Below are positions 21,300 to 62,600 of a DNA stretch of 64,000 nt, in pieces. This DNA comes from Phaeosaccion multiseriatum (lineage: Eukaryota > Protista > Ochrophyta, other classes), in NCBI GenBank assembly GCA_965112735.1, contig OZ218953.1, positions 4,526,001 through 4,590,000 of the forward strand, written 5' to 3'. Made by a program: the position numbers and the translations under genes. The notes beneath the pieces were generated by a model. It searched no databases. It was not told the DNA's origin and worked only from the letters and a program-made list of their open reading frames with translations. Numbering within the stretch: position 1 is the stretch's first letter; each line of letters begins with the position of its first letter.

Positions 21300-24200
21300 A
21301 GGTAGGCAGGCAGGCAGAGCAGATAGGCGGGTAGGTAGTCAGGTAGGCAGGGAGGTATGTAGGCAGGTAAGTACTTGGTACGTAGGAAGGAGGAAGGAGG
21401 TAAGGAAGTAAGTAAGTAAGAAAAAACTATGTGACGTACCTTGGAGATGAAAGGGGTGATAGGCTCCTTCTCCTTGGCCACGAGGCGCTGCATCCTCGCG
21501 TCGCGGATCATGAAGTTCGTGGCGCACGTGTCTTCGTCCACCAGCAGCACCTTGGGGGTGAGGAGGGGGTGGAGGACGAGAGGAGGAGGAGGAGGAGGAG
21601 GAGGAGGAGGTGGAGGAGGAGGAGGAGGAGGAGGAGGAGGAGGAGGAGGAGGAGGAGGAGGAGGAGGAGGAGGAGGAGGAGGAGGGGGGGGGGAGGACAG
21701 GGGGGAGAGGGGGCGAGAGGGGAGGAGGAGGCGAGGGAGGAGGGGTCAAACAACGCGGGCCCGATCGTGTCTTGCCTCGGCTCCTCTATGTACCTACTGG
21801 TCACTCGGTCACTTGAGGCTCGCCCCTTTCTCTCTGGCCCCATCTACTCTTTCCTCGGTCTTACTCGGTATCTGCGGGCCCGCTCGCTTGGTTGCTTACC
21901 TTGGCTCCTGCTTCGAGCGACTCGATGATGTTAGCTGCCTGGCTTGTGCTGCCCGAGCCATCTGGGGTGGAGAAATTCTGAAGAAGCGTTGTTTCGAGGG
22001 GTTCGGGGAGGGGGGTGGGGTGGGGGAGACAAGAAGCAGCAGCAGCAGTTGGTGATACAGGAGCAGTAGAGAGAGGTGCAGGAGGACTCACAAACACAAC
22101 CACCAACCACAACAAAGAGAATAAAGACACAACCTAATCCAACCCAAGCCACCCCACCCCCCCCAACCCAACCCAACCCCACCCCACTCCATCCCACCTA
22201 CCTGTGTGGATTTTCCGAAGGGCAGATTGTCGATAAAGGGTGATATATTGACCCCTGTAACCGCCCGTCCGTCCTCCGCGCGAACCTTGGCGCTCTCCTC
22301 CACCATGGCCACAAACTCCCTACCGTCCCCCGGGATGTGGTTATACACGCCCACCTCCAAGGCTTGGAGCAGGGTGCTCTTGCCGTGGAAGCCCCCCCCT
22401 ACGATGAGGGTGACTCCGGGGCGCACGCCCATGCCTGTTACTTTGCCCCGGTTGGGGAGCTCGAAGGCCACCTGTGTGTGTATGGTGTGTGTTTTGTGTT
22501 TGTACGTATACGTGTATGTGTGTACGTGTGTGATAAGGAGATGACAAGACGCTCTACAGTTACTTATGACACCCTTTCGACGCTCGCTGACTTGACCATC
22601 CACCCAGCACATGCACACGACCCCAATTCCTGCACCCCAATTCCTGCTAACCTCCAGGGATGGGGGTGATTGGAACGCGATGGCCTCGTCGGCTGCCATC
22701 GGCGCGTCATTGTTGCCACTCAGGCGGGGCAGAATACTGGGGGCAAGAGAAGGGGAGATGGAGGGGAGTGGAGGGGACCGGAGGGGAGGGGAGGGGAGGG
22801 GAGGTGAGGGCGGGGAAAGGGAACCGGACAAGATACAAAAAGAAGAAAAGATGACACTACAGTGGCATAGATTGGTCGATCGATACTACGTAAGGGTACG
22901 TAAGGCAATACATAATCGTAAATGCCATCAGATGGATAGAAAGATCATATGGGTACGAGATCAACACTCTCTCCCTCCCCCCTCCTCACGACGCACACAC
23001 AAACTAAGTAATATACTGGAATTTGATTCCCATTCGTCAATTTATCCTCCACCCTCCCCTCCTCACTCACCTGTTGTTGGCCACAAAGCCAATAAGACCC
23101 GCGGCAGGGAGCGCCTCTCTGAGGAAGTGTTGGTCCTCCACGCACTCCAAATGGCGCTGCACGTGAGGGGCCTGCAGGCTCCGGAACAGCAGCGCTTGCC
23201 TCACGAGCTGAGGAAGGTTCTTGGTGAGGATCTCGAGGGCCCATTGTCCGGTGATGTTGCGACCTCGGGCGGGTAGGGCCACAGTGAAGCGTGCCTTGTG
23301 TCATTCAGTCGGTTGGGGGATTGATTGGTTGGGTTAGGTTGGGTTAGGTTGGTTCAGTTGGTTTGGGTTGGGTTGGTTCAGGAGGTGGTGTTTGCATGTG
23401 TGTGTAGGTAGGCGCCTGTGTCGTGTTGTAGATGCGTGCGGGTGGGTCCGTTGAAGTGTAAGCTAAGGTACTGAGTCAAATTGAGCGCTGTACGTGAGTT
23501 GGGCAGTGCGAGTGGGCATCGGGTATCCATCCTCCCCGCCTTCCCGTGCCTCTAGTCCCTCACCTCGATACTCCCGTCGACGTGCACATGCACACTACTC
23601 CTCTCCAGCACGTGCTGCCCAGGCTTGTCGATGGTGATCTCTCCCCCCTGAGACAGGAGCAAGACCCACGCATCACGCCGAGGGAGGGAGGGAGGGAGAT
23701 AGTGAGTGAGTGAATGAGTGAATGAGTAAGTGGGTGAGCCAGAGAGTCAGTGAGTGGTTGACTCAGTGAGTGTGTGAGGGAACAGGTTGGTCAATGAGTG
23801 GGTGAGTGAGAGAGTCAGTGAGTGAGTGAGCGATTCGACAGAGTGACTAATTGAGTGAATAACTGAGTAAGTAAAGTAAGTTTGTGAGCCAGGAAGTGAG
23901 TGGGTGCGTGCGTGGGTGAGTGAGTGGGTGAGTGCGTGGGGGGGTCTAGGGAGGGGCGTGCTCCGCCCGACCTTAATTCCTTCCTTCCTTCCTTCCTTAC
24001 CTTCGCGCCGTGCCAACCCCCTCCCTCAAACCTCTGGTCGGCGCCTGCCTTACTCGCTGCATCCCAAAAGTTCCGGGTGAGGTAGTCACAGAGAGCAATC
24101 CCACGAATCTGTCACGCAAACGATCGATCGTAATCAACCGATCGAAATGTAGGCAGGCACGTAGGTAGGTAGGTAGGTAGATTGACAGGCAGGCAGGTAG

Positions 24201-51151: not shown

Positions 51152-52222
51152 TCATGTGATAATAAAGCGATTGGCGATCAGAAAGCGCCGCATGCTCAAG
51201 GCTGTGGTGTGGTACTCGCTGCGTGGGTCGCTGTTGTACGCCAGGCTGAGGGGGTTTGGGGTTGAGGGTGTGTGTGTGTGTGTGTGTCGGGGGGGGGAGG
51301 GGGAAGGAAAGGAAAACCCAAATCGTTTGTGATGAGACAAAGTGAAGAAGACGACACGTCAACAAGGAGCGAAGAACCGCACACAGCAGGGGAAGCGCGC
51401 ACAGAAAGAGGGAGGTCAGGTGGGGGCAGCAAGCAAGAGAGAGTGTGACCGGTTTGGTCACCCTCACTGACGACCCACGCAGCCACGCACGCACGCAAGC
51501 AAACAAGCAAGCAAGCAAGCACCCTTGCTCCCCCACCTCCCCTTGCCCCTTGCGATGAAGCTAGGCATCGACCTCACAATCGCTTACCAGTTGTCGACCA
51601 TGAGCTTCAGGTCGTCGGAGAAGGCCGCAGAGGTCAGGTACTCGCCACGGACGATCTTCTCGTGAATGATAGTCAAATCTGGGTAGATGGGAGTGAGCGC
51701 ATGCAACGGCAGCGACAGCAAATGCGGCAGCAGCAGGAGGGGCGGCAGGGGCGGCAGGGGATGGGGCACCTTACCTAAGAGCAAGCGACGCACGCGGGCG
51801 TACCATTTGCCTTGCTGCGTTCATGTGTGTGTGTGTGTGTGCGTGCATGCACAGGTAGCCATCCCCTCGCCCAACTACCAACTTACCTATCTGGTGTGGC
51901 ACAATGGAGGCGTAGTCTGGAAACTCCGTCAGGTCCACGGCGTCGACGAAGGGCCAAGCGTGGTCAGAGCTGCGGCACATCTGCCACGAAGTCTCCAACA
52001 GGTCGGACACCTGATGCACGCAAGTCGCATGAAGCAGGCCGACGGTACCGGTGTCGGGATGTCAGTGAGCAACGCATGAAGGAGCAGCGAAACACGACAA
52101 CAACCGTCACGAGCATTATCAAATAACCCTCCCTCCCTGACTACTGGACCTACGCGCTCGCGATGCCCTTCCTCACCTGGTGCTTCCTCCTCCTCTTCCT
52201 CGGAGTCTGCGGCGGCGGCGGC

Positions 52223-52287
<65 letters not shown>

Positions 52288-54825
52288 AGACACCCCTCGG
52301 CGAGGAGTAGTGACAGCCGCTGCTGGCGCCCTCTCTGACTCGTAGCTCGCCCCCGTCATCTCGCTAGCCCCCGCCATGCCATACGTGCTCTGTTGCGAAG
52401 CTTGCGCGCTGTCAAGGCCATTGCTTGTAGCAGCTTTGGAAGGGCCAAGGCTCTCCATGTGGCAGCTGTCGCTCCTCGTCGGACTCGCGCTTCTCGACGC
52501 CACGCTATTCTCCTTTCCCCTCCTAAAGGAGATGCCATCCACGGCGGCATTTTGGTCCAGCGACTCTCCAGCCATCATCCGAGCGTACACGTGTTGAGTG
52601 TCGTCCTCGCTCTGCCCATGTCTACCTTGCTGGTCCGTCGCGGCACTTGCGAACGTATGCATAGGCTGCTGTGAAGGATGAGAAGGAGGAGGAGGAGCCG
52701 CTGTTGCCGCTACGAGAGCGGTCGGCGATGTCTCGAGCGAATCACGGCTTCGCTCGGGCTGATGGGGTACCTGCGGGGGTTTCATTTGTCCAAGCGGAAC
52801 CCTATCCTGTTGCTGTGATTGCCCTCCTCCGCCCTGCTCTTGCTGCGATGACACCGACCTCAGCGACCCCCCGGACTGTGCTTGTGTGTGGCTGTGGCTG
52901 GCAATGGCACTAGCACTCATACTACTGGACTCGGCCGGTGGGGGAGCGGAGTTCCGACACGCCTTCGACTGCAGCGGTAGCGGCGGTGGCTCCTGCTGCT
53001 GCAGAGGTTGGAGAGTGTCTTGCCTCTGTGTGGGTGGTGTGTCTGAGTCTCCTGGCGACGAAGATGCACCATTTAGCCGTGGAGGAGCCACGCCCAGAAG
53101 GCTCAGGCCTGTTGACTGGTGCTGGTGCTGGTGGTCGAGCTCCTGAAGTGGTGCTCGGCCCAGCCTGCTCAGCGAGTCATCAAGTAATACATCAAGCCTC
53201 TGTTCGAAGCAAGGCAATCGGCCACCAGCACCCACACAAGTCGAGGGAGTGGAGCGAAGCACCGAGTGAGCCAGTCGTTCATGGCCCCCAATTTAGCGAC
53301 AGGTAGTGCAGAAAGGCTTGCTCGGTCTACTATGCCTCGTTCTCTGTCTCGATACTCCGGGCAGCGTGGCTGCAGGACTCGTATGGTCTCAACCAAACAC
53401 GGTGCGACATCACACACACACGCACGCACGCACTCTCTCACTCACTCACTCACTCACTCACTCACTCATTCACTCACTCACTCACTCACTCACTCACTCA
53501 CTCACTCACTCACTCACTCACTCACTCACTCACTCACTCACTCACTCACTCACTCACTCACTCACGCACTCACTCACTCACGCACTCGCTCACTCACTCA
53601 CTCACTCACTCACTCACTCACTCACTCACTCACTCACTCACGCACTCACTCGCTCACTCACTCACTCACTCACGCACTCACGCACTCACTCGCTCGCTCA
53701 CTCACCCACCTGCGCGAGTTGGATGAATGGATCGTCGAAGAGCAGCCTCATGACGAAGGCCTGCACCTCTGGAGTGCTGAGGTCGGGGATGGCAGTGGAG
53801 GGCTCAGAGGCTGGCGGGAGGGCCTGCAGCGCGGCCACGGCGGGGGTTGGAGTAAGAGCAGTCCCAGGTGGAGAAGTGCTTTCATTTGGCTGAGCCGTCG
53901 CACCAACATCTTTACTCGGATGAATCAGAGGACCACCGAAGTGAGGCGTGTCTGTGGGTAGCGCAGCCTTGGTCTCTTCTCGCACGTTCACACCTGGGAG
54001 TAGTGTGGTGGTGTTCGCGGGAGTGCGTGTGGGAGGGGTGATTGGGATGAGGAAGGGCGGGCAAGCCAGCCCAATCGCCTGAACAGATCTTCTCTATCTC
54101 CGGTCCTACTCGTTCGACATGACTTCCGAGCACTCTCCTGGATGTCTTACCGTAGTCCCGCAGCTGCCTGCACATGGCCCTCATCACTTCGGGCTCTCCC
54201 GGCCCTCCCACCGCCTCCACGGCGAACTTACGGACGGGGGACCCTGCGCAGTGGAACTTAAGGACAGTAGTGCCCTATCAGAGCAGAGAGAGAGAGAAGA
54301 GAGAATGAGAGAATAGGCGCCAGGCAGACGAGCAAGGCGAGGAGGTGAACGTGAGAAAGAGAGGAGCGGTACTGTGTTGGGGAACAGGCTGTGGCTTGCG
54401 AGGACGCCGCTGCAACAGCCAGGGAATCAAGTCAAGCAAGCAAGCGCTGGAACAGGGGATCAAGCCAAGCTCTCTGCCTCTCACTCTCCGATCGGCCTCT
54501 GGCTGACTGCTGCGCCGGCAGCAACAAACGAGCACCTTACCTTGAGACTGGTGTACAAGTACGCTCTGAGGACATTCCCAGGGAGCGCGATAGTCTCCTG
54601 ATGGAGGATCTGACGAGGCCCTCCCCGCTGTGTGTAGCTCAGCACCAAGATCGCTCGTCTCGGCAGGGGCAGCGTGCTCCGCTCCGCCGCCCCTGCTGTT
54701 TGTTCAGCAGCAACGATCTGAAACGTGTGCCTCTCGCTGTGCCGGTGCCAGCCCCTTTGAGGGAGCTTCCTCAAGAAGAGGCACGGCAGCGGCGCAGCAC
54801 CAGCAGGCGCAGTGCTGCACAGCAT
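51152..54825 (-). CDS. 674-aa protein: REC114/PHS1-like N-terminal module (tentative) + disordered linker + C-terminal bromodomain
   Basis: Seven exons (54825-54541, 54274-54151, 53993-53710, 53199-52177, 52010-51887, 51678-51588, 51245-51152) splice in frame, total 2025 nt. The bromodomain is clear: AWPFVDAVD..FPDYASIV..IDL..I.EK..GEY....FSDDLKLMVDNCLAYN. The REC114 resemblance is by eye. Confidence 0.75.
53437..53705. repeat. (CTCA)n microsatellite, about 270 bp, intronic
   Basis: CTCA array with CGCA/CTCG variants, immediately after a minus-strand donor (GTGG(GTGA)n). Confidence 0.95.
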
Positions 54826-55126
54826 CTCTCTCCTATTTTGCGCTCTTCGCGCCCTTTTCCTGAAAGGAACCCGGGGGGACGTTATTCATTCGAAGGAATA
54901 CGGGAAAAGCTGTTGCAGGGGAGCAAAAAAAAAAAATGGCAAAAAAATTTCGACGGCCCGCCGCACTTCTCTCCCAGAGTATTAGAGCGCCACGCCGAGC
55001 AGCAACCCTCACAAGGATGAAATAGCGCAGACGCACAGCTTCATTCACGCACGCGTGAAGTACGGAGAGGAAGGCAGAGAGAGACGCTTAATCAACAAGA
55101 AACATCGTCGAAGTGGTGGGCCAAAG

Positions 55127-57718: not shown

Positions 57719-59282
57719 ATGGGGCGAAGAAGCAGGCCTTCCGAGAGCAGCACGGCGTGGCACCTTCTTGCTTTCACGCTCGCGACCTCGGTGCTCCGGT
57801 GTCAAGAGAGTGCGGCTTTTGTCCTCCATGCCAATCCCTCCCCCCGCACGTGCTCTGGTCGCCTGTCTGGGCGCCTTTCGATGACTCTGGGGAAAAGGGA
57901 GGCCTCCCCGCTCACATGGAGGCAAAATCTGGAGCTGCTGGGCCTTCCAGGAACTTCAGGCGCGGAGAGGCAAATCCTATTGCTGAATCTGCTTGGGGCG
58001 CCTCCGGTGGCCGTGCAAGACGTGATGACAGCGGCGACCAGGGGAAGGATTGTGGAGGACATCATACTGCAGGAAGGGACAGAGGCGAGGAAGTTAGCGG
58101 ACGGGGTGAAAGCGGTCCGTAAGCAGCTACAAGAGGTGAGACATCACGTGGTATTGACAAGATGAACGAGAGAACACTTGTCTTGAGAATGTGTTTGACT
58201 TTGCTCCGCCGCTGCCCATCTCCGCCCCTGACCCCTCCTCTTCATCTTCGCGCCTGTGTTATCGAAATCGAAAGGATTTGCTGCCTCAACTGGCGAAGGA
58301 GGGCCCTGCCATGAGCCGTAAGCTCGCCAGCCAGTTGACAGAAGAGCTCCCCAAGGAGCTGAAGGAGCAGCTTCCCACCGCAGTCGCTGCAGCATCAGCA
58401 GCCGTCGCCAACCCGGCCACTGTGCTCTCCGCGGCCCGCTCTCTGCAGGAGGAAGCGAGTAACGTGTTTCAGAGCACGCCCGAAGGCCTCTACACCCCGC
58501 CCTACGACGTTGTAGCGGTTGGCGATGGAGGCAACGGAGGGGCGAGCAAGTACGAGCTGCGCTTGTACGATAGCTATGCCGTGTGCTCCACCGAAATGGC
58601 AGCGCCAGAGGTGTCCAAGTCAGGGGCAGGAGGAGACGGGGGAAGGCAGGAGGAGGAGGGGGAGAAGGGGGAAGAGGAGCGCGAGGCTGCCTTGACCACG
58701 GCCGCGAGTGGGGAGGGGTTTAACACGCTCGCGGGCTACATCTTTGGCGGGAACGAAGGGGGAAAGAAGATGGCCATGACCATGCCGGTGCTCATCGACA
58801 AGGAGCAAGGGGGTGGGCAGACCATGTCCTTCGTTATGCCCAAGGAGGTTGGCGGCGAGGGAGCGGGGGGAGAGGAGGCTCCGCAGCCCAACGACCCCAA
58901 AGTGAAAGTGTCCAGGAGACCCAAACAGCTGGTAGCGGTGGCGACGTTTCCCGGCTTTGCGACGGAGGGAGAAGTAAAGCGCCAGCTGGACGGACTCAAG
59001 GACGCCGTGCAAAGAGACGGCCTGCTGCTTCTCGACCAGCGGCCGGGGGCTCTGACGGGGGAGGAGAAGGACAAGGAAGACAAGGAGGGGGAGAAGGAGA
59101 CGGTTCCTTCAAAGGGTGGGAGTACCGGTGACAACGTCGCATACACGTTGCTGCAGTACAACCCGCCTTACACGCTACCCTTTCTTCGTCGCAATGAGCT
59201 CTCTCTGACCATCGACGTTAAAGGATCTAGAGCCGTCCTGGAGGGGCTCATGGACCTCGACGGGTGGGCAGAAGGAGGATGA
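57719..59282 (+). CDS. SOUL haem-binding protein, probably plastid-targeted
   Basis: Signal peptide ending ESAA|FVL. SOUL motifs YELRLY, GFNTLAGYIFGGN, KMAMTMPV, MSFVMP, PQPNDPKV, VAVATFPG, QYNPPYTLPFLRRNE. Intron 58136-58274. Confidence 0.92.
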
Positions 59283-59686
59283 TGAAGGGTGATTGTATTT
59301 ATCCTCGCTGTGTTCGACTGTGTGAAGTCGAGGCTCACAGATTTTTTTTTTTAAAATACTACCAACAGCTCTACAGTTACGTTTTCCTTTTTTTTCTTCT
59401 CTCCTTCTACCCCCTTTTATACTTCAGTAGTGATTCTGCTCGAGGCCAGCAGCAGCAGAGATCGGAAGGTCCAGCAGTCGTTCTCTTACCCTCTTTCCTC
59501 GTCATTTGTCCCTCAGTGAGTGCTTCTGCTCGAGGAGGCCAGGAGCCGCAGGGACTGATGTAAATGCCATGACATGACTGGTGTGAGGCCAGTGCCCAGC
59601 AGCAAGGAGGAGACCCTTGTTCAGCTGACTGTGTGAGGCCAGCCAGAGCCCAGGAGCGAAGGTATAGCTGCTGTAGGACGTTCTCG

Positions 59687-62600
59687 ATGTATATGCCCCC
59701 ACCGTGGGTGCTCCTGTCCTTGGTGGTTGGGTTCACCAAGGACGTGCAGAAGTTTAAGGACTTGGGAGTGAATTTCTTCTACACGGTGACTGGCAAAGGG
59801 GGGCAGTGCGCGCTTTGCGACAACATTATCGGGCTGGTGATGCGCTTCGAGCAAGATAACCCCGAGGACATAAACTGCGAGGCCATCTGCTTCTTCTCCT
59901 TCAGCAAGTGTGTGACCATGTGCGAAAAGATTGTCGCCGCCTTGGATAGCTCTAGTCACTACCCTTGCGTGGCTGCCAATCTCTGCCCAGAGCTCGATGA
60001 ATTTGGAGAAGCAGACACTTGCGCGTGGTCCTGGAAAGAGAGAGAGTGCGAGCCCGCTGCGAAATGCGACCTCAGCTTTGGTGGGCGCAAGAATCCGCTC
60101 AGCAAGGTATTCCCCAAGTGCAGCATGAAGGCCGGCTACAAGCGATGGAACTATTACAACAAAGCCGTGGCCAAGCACGGAGGCGCTCTCCTCAGCGCCA
60201 TTCAGTCCGCCCCGCGATGTGGACAGGCTGCAGCCAAAGACGCCTTATATTGCGTCAATGAGCCTACGGGGGTGGGCCGCTTGAGCATGTACGCGGGTTA
60301 CCTCTTGCTGTCCCTCGCTGTCGTCAAGAGTATCGGAGCCATCGAGACCCCCGGTGGGGACGATGACCGACAGTGGCTGGCGTTTTGGATGATCATGTTT
60401 CTCTTCTTCCTGGTGGAGCGATTCAGCGACGTTCTACTGTCGCGCTTCTCTCTCTACTACCAGTTCAAGCTGTTGTGTGTCATGTACATGATGTTCGGCA
60501 GGGGCGCGGACCTGGCCTACCGCCGAGTGCACAGGGGGTTTACTCGTCTGCGCTCTGTGCCCCTGCTGCACCGCCTGTTGCTCTCGACGAACATGGACAC
60601 AGAGAAAACCATACACGAGTACACAGAGAGCCTCGACAAGGACCCCCGCATGCTCGCCTTTGTCAGGGACGCGTGGAGGGTGGGGCTGGAGGAGCTACTG
60701 GGAAGCTTCTCGTGCCCGAGGGACATGAGAGAAAGATACCCGCTCGCCGCCCCGGCCCTGCTGGAGCAGTGGGACAGCCTAGAGCCGCGCTATGTGCAGG
60801 TCGAACTCACGAGCGCCGGAGGGCTGGTTCCGGCCTCCTCCAACCCCTTGGACTGCGACGCCTACTGCATACTTCACCTCGTTGCCCCCGAGGAGAGTCA
60901 GAGCCCCACCGCCACCCCCACCGGCACCGGCACGGGTACCATCAACCTTGCATCCACCTTTAGTTGGGACGAGTCCGCCTTAGAAGCAAGAGAAGAAGAA
61001 CAAGAACAAGAACAAGAACAAGAAGACGACAACGACGACGACGAAGAGGACAGGCAAGGGGAAGGGGGAGGTTGCGGCGGAGACGTGGATGGGGAGGATG
61101 AGAAGACAGGAGGGGGGGCCTCAGTGACTACTACAAGTACCGCCACGACTCCACTGCCGCGCTACTTTTCTTCTCGTGCGAGGTCGAGGATCTTTGGGGG
61201 GAAGGAGGGGGAGAAGGAGGAGGAGGAGGAGGAGGAGGAGGAGGAGGAGGAGGAGGAGGAGGAGGACGAGGAGGAGGAGGAGGAGGAGGAAGATAGTCCT
61301 AGCAGGGTGGGCAAGGGGGCAGAGAACAGTCGGCAAACAGGGATACTACCACAAGGGTCAACGAGCCACAGCGAGGACATGGCACAGCCTTCAGAGAGTG
61401 GCACTGGGGGGAGGGAGGGGGGGGGTGGGGGTTCTACAGACAGACAGGGGCGGGTGCGGAGGAGGAAAGCAGTATGGGGGCACCGGCGACCAGTTTCGCA
61501 ATCTCTCTCTCTTGAGGAGGACTCACTGTTCCACTTGAGCGAAGAGCGACAAGACACAGTACCCGCCGCATCATCTCCGTTTCGTCGACGATCGAGCAGC
61601 TTGTCCGCTCTCAAGGTCTTGACATCGACCCGCAGCCCCAAGACGCTTCAAGCCTTGGGGGAGTTGTCGTTAGGAGGTACAGTAGGTATCGTGAGTCACT
61701 ACTTTCTTGGCTTGCTTCCCGCTGCTCCTCCCCCTGGCCATGGCCCCGCTGGGGACAGGGCAGGGGCTGGGGCGGGAAAGGGTTCAGCTGCTCCACTCAC
61801 CTCGCTTCGTCAGCCAGCTCAAACACTCATGCACTCACCTACCTTTCCCCACCTTTCCTACTCCCTTGCCTCTCTGACTCACTGCTCCTAAAGCTACGCG
61901 GGATCGTTCTTGGAGTCCGGTGGCCGCCCTTGTCAATCCTGGCGTCAAAGGAGTCAAAGTGAGTTTGAGTTCGAGTTAGGTAGGCATACGGGGAGAGTGC
62001 GGGTGTGGTTGTGGGTGCGTGAATAAGAGGGACTCAAGGTTTGATCTAACACATACGCATGTTATGTACATGTATGTAACCGAATCGAATACACACGTAT
62101 GTTATGTACTCCTCCTCCCCTCCTCCCATCGATGTGGACAGATACTGAAGAGGAAGTTGGTGGGGAGCGATCCCTCGCCCGGGGAGAGGTACGGCCGTCA
62201 GCGCTCCAGGACCGTGACGAGGACCACAAGCCCCGAGTGGGAGCAGCAGGTAGAGTAGGAGGGTGTACCTAACCGAACCTTCCCTATCCGAACCTTACCC
62301 ATTCTGAATCGTAGAGTACCAAACCGAAGCTTCCCGAACCTAACCTAACCTTTTTATCAATCGCAACGATCGATTGATCGAATCTCAACGAACACTTGCG
62401 TGCGCTCAGCTGAATGGGGATACTTTGCTTTGCGCTTGATTGAGCACGCACGGCGGAGAGCAAGAGAGCAGGCAGGTGGCCATCCGGTCAGGTCGTCGCC
62501 AGCCCTTCTCACCCCCTCCTCCTGCTTCCTCTTTTCCCTCCCCAACTCTACTCTACTGCCATCCATCTGTATGTCTACCTCCACACTATCCACTACTATC

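Follow-up and report, generated by a model that had tools for sequence, protein, structure and literature searches.

Whether a single protein of the alga Phaeosaccion multiseriatum joins a meiotic double-strand break (DSB) factor to a reader of acetylated histones is the question raised by a gene within 64,000 nucleotides of its contig OZ218953.1 (positions 4,526,001 to 4,590,000, hereafter the window). The sites at which SPO11 breaks DNA are tied to chromatin marks, namely to H3K4me3 via Spp1-Mer2 in yeast and to PRDM9 in mammals, and to our knowledge this link has been established in just a few model organisms. REC114 is expressed in meiosis and required for DSBs, and it binds the N-terminal MEI4 helix in a 2:1 complex. 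The original prediction saw in the algal gene a REC114/PHS1-like protein fused to a bromodomain. The reading preferred here, tentatively, is a single gene of seven exons that encodes a chromatin adaptor of the nucleus, the N-terminal module of which has no detectable relatives and an ancestry that is left open.

Gene structure

The gene occupies positions 51152–54825 of the minus strand, and its seven exons join into one frame of 674 codons. Exon 1 (54825–54541, aa 1–95, donor GTAAGG) encodes most of a putative beta-rich N-terminal domain and contains the start ATG (54825–54823), its sole Met. Exon 2 (54274–54151, aa 96–136) contributes a strand-turn-strand (TVLKF / RKFAV) followed by the helix EVMRAMCRQLRDY, which closes this domain. 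Exon 3 (53993–53710, aa 137–231) carries a P/A/T-rich linker and then the first of the two helices that form a helix-turn-helix, along with its turn and its Phe. The remainder of the second helix (RLDVLLDD..) is encoded by exon 4 (53199–52177, aa 232–572), together with a disordered stretch, a polyQ run and the basic string PRKRRRK. The last three exons encode a bromodomain: helix Z, the WPF shelf and PDY in exon 5 (52010–51887, aa 573–613), helices A and B in exon 6 (51678–51588, aa 614–643), and the BC-loop YN and helix C in exon 7 (51245–51152, aa 644–674, with the stop TGA at 51154–51152).

All six introns are of the GT-AG type, an AG-free zone of 83–215 nt precedes each acceptor, and the phases are compatible at every junction, including 52177^52010 (phase 0/0). 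The frame of the model has the highest codon score among the three sense frames in each of the seven exons, and in exon 4 this holds for all 150-nt sliding windows. The open frame of exon 4 extends over 370 codons, and about 0.01 frames of this kind would be expected by chance per window. The neighbours of the gene include SOUL and HVA22. The frame-consistent seven-exon gene of the original prediction thus stands, the peptide strings quoted there are all present in the translation, and the locus, judged from its sequence, is one real gene.

The C-terminal bromodomain

An intact bromodomain of the GCN5/BPTF class at the C-terminus is confirmed by profile and structure matches to its sequence, as had been claimed from the motifs WPF, PDY and YN. 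Exon 5 corresponds to positions 9–37 of Pfam profile PF00439 (E 0.0057, 17 bits) and exon 6 to positions 39–67 (E 3.4e-4, 21 bits). Each of these single-exon scores lies under the Pfam gathering score of 21.7, and the two pieces are colinear across the predicted junction. In the PDB, exon 5 matches GCN5, PCAF and BPTF, and exon 6 matches BAZ1A and BRD9, at consecutive chain positions. The pocket residues are intact (WPF 591–593, PDY 603–605 with the ZA-loop Tyr605, YN 647–648), Asn648 in the BC loop is the predicted acetyl-lysine-binding residue, and the protein terminates with this domain. Exon 7 alone gave no match. By eye, exon 7 fits the GCN5-type motif NCxxYN..SEY.

The bromodomain was the sole match in the Pfam, PDB and Atlas searches of the exon pieces, and neither a metagenome scan with the exon 5 open reading frame nor a word-indexed homologue search with exon 5 yielded a match. 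No in-frame ATG precedes the WPF helix in exon 5, so the bromodomain must be spliced to upstream exons. Its phase matches that of exon 4, and the claim that the bromodomain and the N-terminus belong to the same gene is borne out to this extent.

The disordered tether

The disordered stretch of exon 4 comprises about 320 aa, is rich in Q, S, P and A, and includes a run of 21 Q (52225–52287); a word-indexed homologue search with exon 4 found no relative. The NLS-like PRKRRRK is found as described, at aa 564–570 (52183–52203), just before the bromodomain. The SQ/TQ dipeptides of this region had been put forward as Rec114-like phosphosites, but eight are present where 10.8 are expected from composition, and with no enrichment this argument is lost.

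The N-terminal module

The N-terminus had been described as beta-rich and helix-capped. This description is weakly supported: for exon 2 on its own, AlphaFold2 predicts a strand-strand-helix (E3–7, E15–19, H27–40) with a pLDDT of 69.7, and exon 1 on its own reaches a pLDDT of 46.8 with one hairpin (57–65/71–80). Fold searches with the 41-aa model of exon 2 returned generic beta-beta-alpha matches only, and exon 2 has no Pfam match. A phmmer search with exon 1 against 1.84 billion representative proteins gave no match, not even to its own gene, which means that this genome is absent from the library. Searches with exon 1 in Pfam, the PDB, the ESM Atlas and metagenomes likewise found nothing.

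Exon 2 is also weakly alphaRep/HEAT-like. An assignment to such repeats (alphaRep/PBS-lyase), which are tandem helix-turn-helix units with the consensus VRxxAAxALGxIGDxxA, was rejected in view of the beta-beta-alpha arrangement given by AlphaFold2, in which VRKFAV lies in strands and not in a helix. The repeat is present in a single copy of at best 10 bits, and no HEAT family of Pfam matches.

The linker that follows (aa 138–208) is rich in P, A and T, with 65% disorder-promoting residues. It leads to the helix-turn-helix of aa 209–246 (53778–53155, spanning intron 3), which resembles the motif SSM7 of REC114. In SSM7, the turn is directly followed by a Phe that hardly ever varies, F+4, F+7 and F+11 are hydrophobic, and F+8 is acidic (Liu et al. 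2023, PMC10393192). All of these features are present here: the turn DDP is followed by F226 and I227, the hydrophobic positions are taken by A230, L233 and L237, and the acidic one by D234. The counterparts in yeast are F411/I412/V415/V418/E419/L422 (PMC10393192).

REC114 ancestry

The strongest rival to an adaptor of open ancestry is that the gene is a REC114/PHS1 orthologue to which a C-terminal tether and bromodomain have been added, with aa 1 to about 246 representing the PH domain (SSM1–6), linker and SSM7. This is a serious possibility, though a doubtful one. An equally doubtful corollary is that the SSM7 helices would dimerise around the N-terminal helix of MEI4/PRD2 and that the bromodomain would place REC114-MEI4 on acetylated chromatin.

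Besides the full set of SSM7 features, with residues matching those of yeast, several observations point to such an origin. In an ungapped 29-aa BLOSUM62 alignment, the helix-turn-helix scores 42 against the C-terminus of Arabidopsis thaliana PHS1 (sequence from PMC9957857), whereas shuffled sequences score 24 ± 3.4; the match lies 5 sd above the shuffles, with p of about 7e-4 per protein. The SSM7-like motif is complete only across the predicted splice 53710^53199, and the regular expression for its core matches the 674-aa protein once, at the helix-turn-helix. Size and spacing are as in mouse REC114, where the PH domain spans residues 15–159 and the MEI4-binding region residues 203–254 (PMC6288613). 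The beta-beta-alpha unit modelled for exon 2 is what would be expected of the last PH strands and helix. By eye, GTTV..RKFAV resembles GTTI..RMFRV of mouse and also QKFAL of Arabidopsis.

Other results speak against a REC114 origin. No exon piece matches a REC114 profile in Pfam (E ≤ 10) or a solved chain in the PDB; this includes the 48-aa helix piece, which has no Pfam or PDB match of its own, and a two-sequence profile of this piece and the PHS1 C-terminus retrieved adenovirus fibre and Quaking from the PDB but no REC114. Two further comparisons were not significant (p range 0.13–0.7), one with the PHS1 segment KFALRF at the PH end and one with the mouse C-terminal motif used in the original prediction. 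The core SSM7 pattern has low specificity, with some 200 matches expected per proteome, and the score of 42 falls below the chance maximum of a proteome-wide scan. Furthermore, the algal motif is internal, with 428 residues after aa 246, whereas published accounts locate SSM7 at the C-terminus of the protein or close to it. The position of R117, which binds TOPOVIBL in mouse, is occupied by Ala, and the SQ/TQ sites are not enriched.

REC114 proteins evolve too fast for ordinary searches (PMC9957857, PMC10393192), and in a positive control the genuine C-terminal piece of PHS1 also found no REC114 in the PDB; nor did it give a match in the word-indexed homologue search. Little can therefore be concluded from the failure of single pieces to find REC114, and searches of this kind cannot settle fast-evolving spliced genes. 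A random orphan would be expected to agree less well with REC114 than this N-terminus does in its layout and its SSM7-like motif. As judged from these comparisons, descent of the first 245 or so residues from REC114/PHS1 is conceivable but somewhat less probable than the adaptor of open ancestry.

One transcript or several

A less probable explanation is that the exons united in the model share an mRNA only some of the time or not at all. The locus might, for instance, yield a short product from the N-terminal part, and the bromodomain might belong to a separate or alternative isoform with another 5' exon. No junction has transcript evidence: in public RNA runs, reads from the locus fall solely within the (GCAA)n repeat of intron 6 (51476–51522), and the read runs that contain the locus are genomic DNA, with the introns present. 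Short isoforms could arise by intron retention. Retained intron 3 introduces a stop after three codons, in the middle of the helix-turn-helix (protein end ..LAQVGE), and retained intron 4 a stop after eight. In addition, a (GTGA)75 microsatellite (53709–53410) begins at the donor of intron 3 and offers many alternative donors. Against separate products, exon 4 is coding-like from its acceptor onward and has its first ATG no earlier than aa 324, exon 5 lacks a start codon, the phases fit at all junctions, and the AG-free zones (115 nt upstream of exon 4) indicate exactly the acceptors of the model. A division of the locus is accordingly regarded as improbable.

That the N-terminal exons are noncoding (a shadow open reading frame or a decayed gene), leaving the disordered region and bromodomain as the real part, is very improbable: exon 1 has no homologue, a low pLDDT and a codon score that is near zero and roughly equal to that of one antisense frame, yet its GC3 of 0.72 exceeds GC1 and GC2. 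It also has a canonical donor, and the acceptor that follows is preceded by 95 nt free of AG. Furthermore, exon 2 has a positive codon score and folds at a pLDDT of 70, and exon 4 needs an upstream start.

Proposed function and comparison with known systems

As a chromatin adaptor, the protein would dock onto acetylated histone tails through its bromodomain. The Q/S/P-rich tether with its polyQ run would connect this domain to the N-terminal module, which appears to consist of a beta-rich, helix-capped domain of about 115 aa and the amphipathic helix-turn-helix. This module may bind partners or dimerise with them, and such partners would thereby be recruited to acetylated chromatin. If the module is not REC114, the protein would be a bromodomain adaptor peculiar to its lineage, and of ordinary interest.

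The more far-reaching proposal is unlikely on present comparisons: that this is the REC114 orthologue of the alga, in which the helix pair that binds MEI4 has come to lie inside the chain through the addition of a disordered tether and GCN5-type bromodomain, so that the DSB module reads acetylation directly. If true, meiotic breaks would be sited by a single chain in place of Spp1-Mer2 or PRDM9, and cryptic sex in an alga would become accessible at the molecular level. It would also place REC114 in an algal lineage; in one survey, the REC114 family was not detected in Chlorophyta (PMC9957857). The tethering of hotspots by a bromodomain and the occurrence of sex, both suggested in the original prediction, would be extrapolations from REC114 ancestry. 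Of 12 papers in which both REC114 and a bromodomain are mentioned, none names the two together in its title or abstract.

Like REC114, PHS1 and Rec7, the algal protein has within its first 246 or so residues a small beta-rich domain closed by a helix, then a disordered linker and a helix-turn-helix, with the Phe after the turn, the hydrophobic and acidic spacing of SSM7, and a nominally significant match to the PHS1 C-terminus. Unlike them, it gives no profile or structural match when searched by pieces, and its helix pair is followed by the 320-aa tether and the bromodomain. Under REC114 ancestry, the protein would be analogous to Spp1(PHD)-Mer2 in coupling a histone-mark reader to the RMM module; its reader would differ from Spp1-Mer2 and PRDM9 in being covalently fused and in recognising acetyl-lysine rather than H3K4me3.

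The bromodomains of the GCN5/PCAF and BPTF/CECR2 class are the best solved matches of exon 5, and their WPF, PDY, NCxxYN and SEY motifs are present. In contrast to GCN5, PCAF and BPTF, the algal protein lacks an acetyltransferase domain, a PHD finger and any other known partner domain, and the remainder is an orphan. It shares with GCN5 the position of the bromodomain at the extreme C-terminus.

Gene structure

The gene under study comprises seven exons on the minus strand (exon 1, 54825-54541; exon 2, 54274-54151; exon 3, 53993-53710; exon 4, 53199-52177, 1023 nt; exon 5, 52010-51887; exon 6, 51678-51588; exon 7, 51245-51152), which are joined through GT-AG introns of compatible phase into 2025 nt encoding 674 aa. 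In codon score, the model frame exceeds the other sense frames in each of the seven exons and is the best in every 150-nt window across exon 4. All six acceptors are the first AG past an AG-free zone of 83-215 nt, where about 20 nt would be expected, and keeping any single intron in leads to a stop after 1-79 codons. Judged by these three independent sequence features, the predicted seven-exon model is a real gene, in agreement with the frame-consistent gene of the original prediction.

Exon 1 is the least supported, with a codon score of about zero, the same as that of one antisense frame. An antisense ORF of 209 aa (54391-55020, plus strand) overlaps exon 1 and the promoter region. It has about the same codon score as exon 1, and the R/S/P-rich protein it would encode resembles the product of a shadow ORF. 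Intron 3 opens with a (GTGA)n microsatellite (about 75 units; 53410-53709, minus strand) that starts exactly at its 5' splice donor, so that dozens of tandem GTGAGT donor-like sites follow this donor. Reading through intron 3 meets a TGA after three codons.

No ATG precedes the bromodomain in the frame of exon 5, so the domain needs the upstream exons, and the open frame of exon 4 starts at its acceptor and holds no ATG before aa 324. These two features make a single predicted gene carrying both the N-terminal module and the bromodomain the best reading, and a fusion is the most economical interpretation of the sequence.

Bromodomain and disordered region

Exons 5 and 6 match Pfam PF00439 at positions 9-37 (E 0.0057) and 39-67 (E 3.4e-4), colinear over the predicted junction. 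Among solved structures, exon 5 matches GCN5, PCAF and BPTF, and exon 6 matches the adjoining chain positions in BAZ1A and BRD9. The WPF (591-593), PDY (603-605) and YN (647-648) motifs proposed earlier are all intact. Exon 7 searched alone gave no match; by eye, it shows a GCN5-type NCxxYN..SEY motif. Judged by sequence, the bromodomain predicted from these exons is real.

The disordered part contains the eight SQ/TQ dipeptides previously counted, but a region with its proportions of S, T and Q should have 10.8, which voids the argument built on them. Exon 4 also holds a perfect (CAG)21 repeat (52224-52287), whose length may be polymorphic; it encodes a 21-residue polyQ followed by five Pro, directly ahead of the basic PRKRRRK.

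Possible relationship of the N-terminal module to REC114

The N-terminal domain was searched and folded piecewise, as single exons. Exon 1 had no match among 1.84 billion representatives, Pfam, PDB, the ESM Atlas and metagenomes, and its predicted fold alone is poor (pLDDT 46.8). The only resemblance found for the exon 2 peptide VRKFAVEAVGGPGEPEVMRAMCRQLRD (54152-54274) is a weak one to the consensus of designed alphaRep/HEAT-like repeats (PDB 8aw4), with a summed E of 9e-4 and 10 bits in the strongest single repeat. A HEAT-like repeat is disfavoured because AlphaFold2 predicts a strand-strand-helix (pLDDT 69.7). This predicted fold agrees with the last part of a PH-like domain; the matches that fold searches returned for the 41-aa model were generic.

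The best evidence for REC114, a meiotic DSB accessory protein, is the helix-turn-helix at aa 209-246. SSM7, the MEI4-binding element of REC114, consists of two amphipathic helices with a near-invariant Phe after the turn (yeast F411), conserved hydrophobics V415, V418 and L422, and the acidic, near-invariant E419 (Liu et al., PMC10393192). In the algal protein, F226 directly follows a DDP turn, and A230, L233, D234 and L237 stand at SSM7 spacings; the motif is complete only via the predicted 53710^53199 splice. The core pattern is expected about 200 times per proteome. The C-terminus of Arabidopsis PHS1, the plant REC114, as printed in PMC9957857, aligns ungapped with aa 211-239 over 29 residues, with a BLOSUM62 score of 42 against 24 +/- 3.4 for shuffles (~7e-4 per protein). 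A scan of a whole proteome would reach scores higher than 42 by chance. Mouse REC114 has a PH domain at 15-159 and binds MEI4 through 203-254 (PMC6288613), and the algal protein mirrors these positions of domain, linker and helices. Counting against REC114, the algal helix pair lies inside the chain, ahead of 428 further residues.

Neither the mouse REC114 motif invoked in the original prediction nor the Arabidopsis PHS1 'KFALRF' segment matched the protein significantly, and the helix piece had no match in Pfam or PDB. Such negative searches have little power, because a genuine PHS1 C-terminus used as a control also found no REC114 chain in PDB. In Chlorophyta, both PHS1/REC114 and PRD2/MEI4 went undetected in a survey from 2023 (PMC9957857). 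REC114 ancestry of the module is a credible lead, though less probable than not, and it is safer to call the protein a lineage-specific adaptor that reads acetyl-lysine and whose N-terminal interaction module is an orphan. The proposed hotspot tethering and the suggestion of sex both depend wholly on the putative REC114 assignment.

Sequencing runs and neighbouring ORFs

The locus is contained only in runs X12-X15, all from one sample; these are genomic, with contigs colinear with the introns. RNA runs (marine, seawater and 'organism A'; word shares 0.05-0.06) match only a (GCAA)n microsatellite in intron 6 (51476-51522), so their shares of 5-6% were rejected as expression. The 14-mer AGTTGGTGATACAG occurs once, at 22047 on the plus strand, and is absent from the gene at 51152-54825. 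Two plus-strand ORFs, one with a SOUL haem-binding domain (58191-59282, E 2.4e-35) and one with a TB2/DP1/HVA22 domain (59633-61891, E 9.8e-16), are possible synteny anchors for orthologous loci in sister species.
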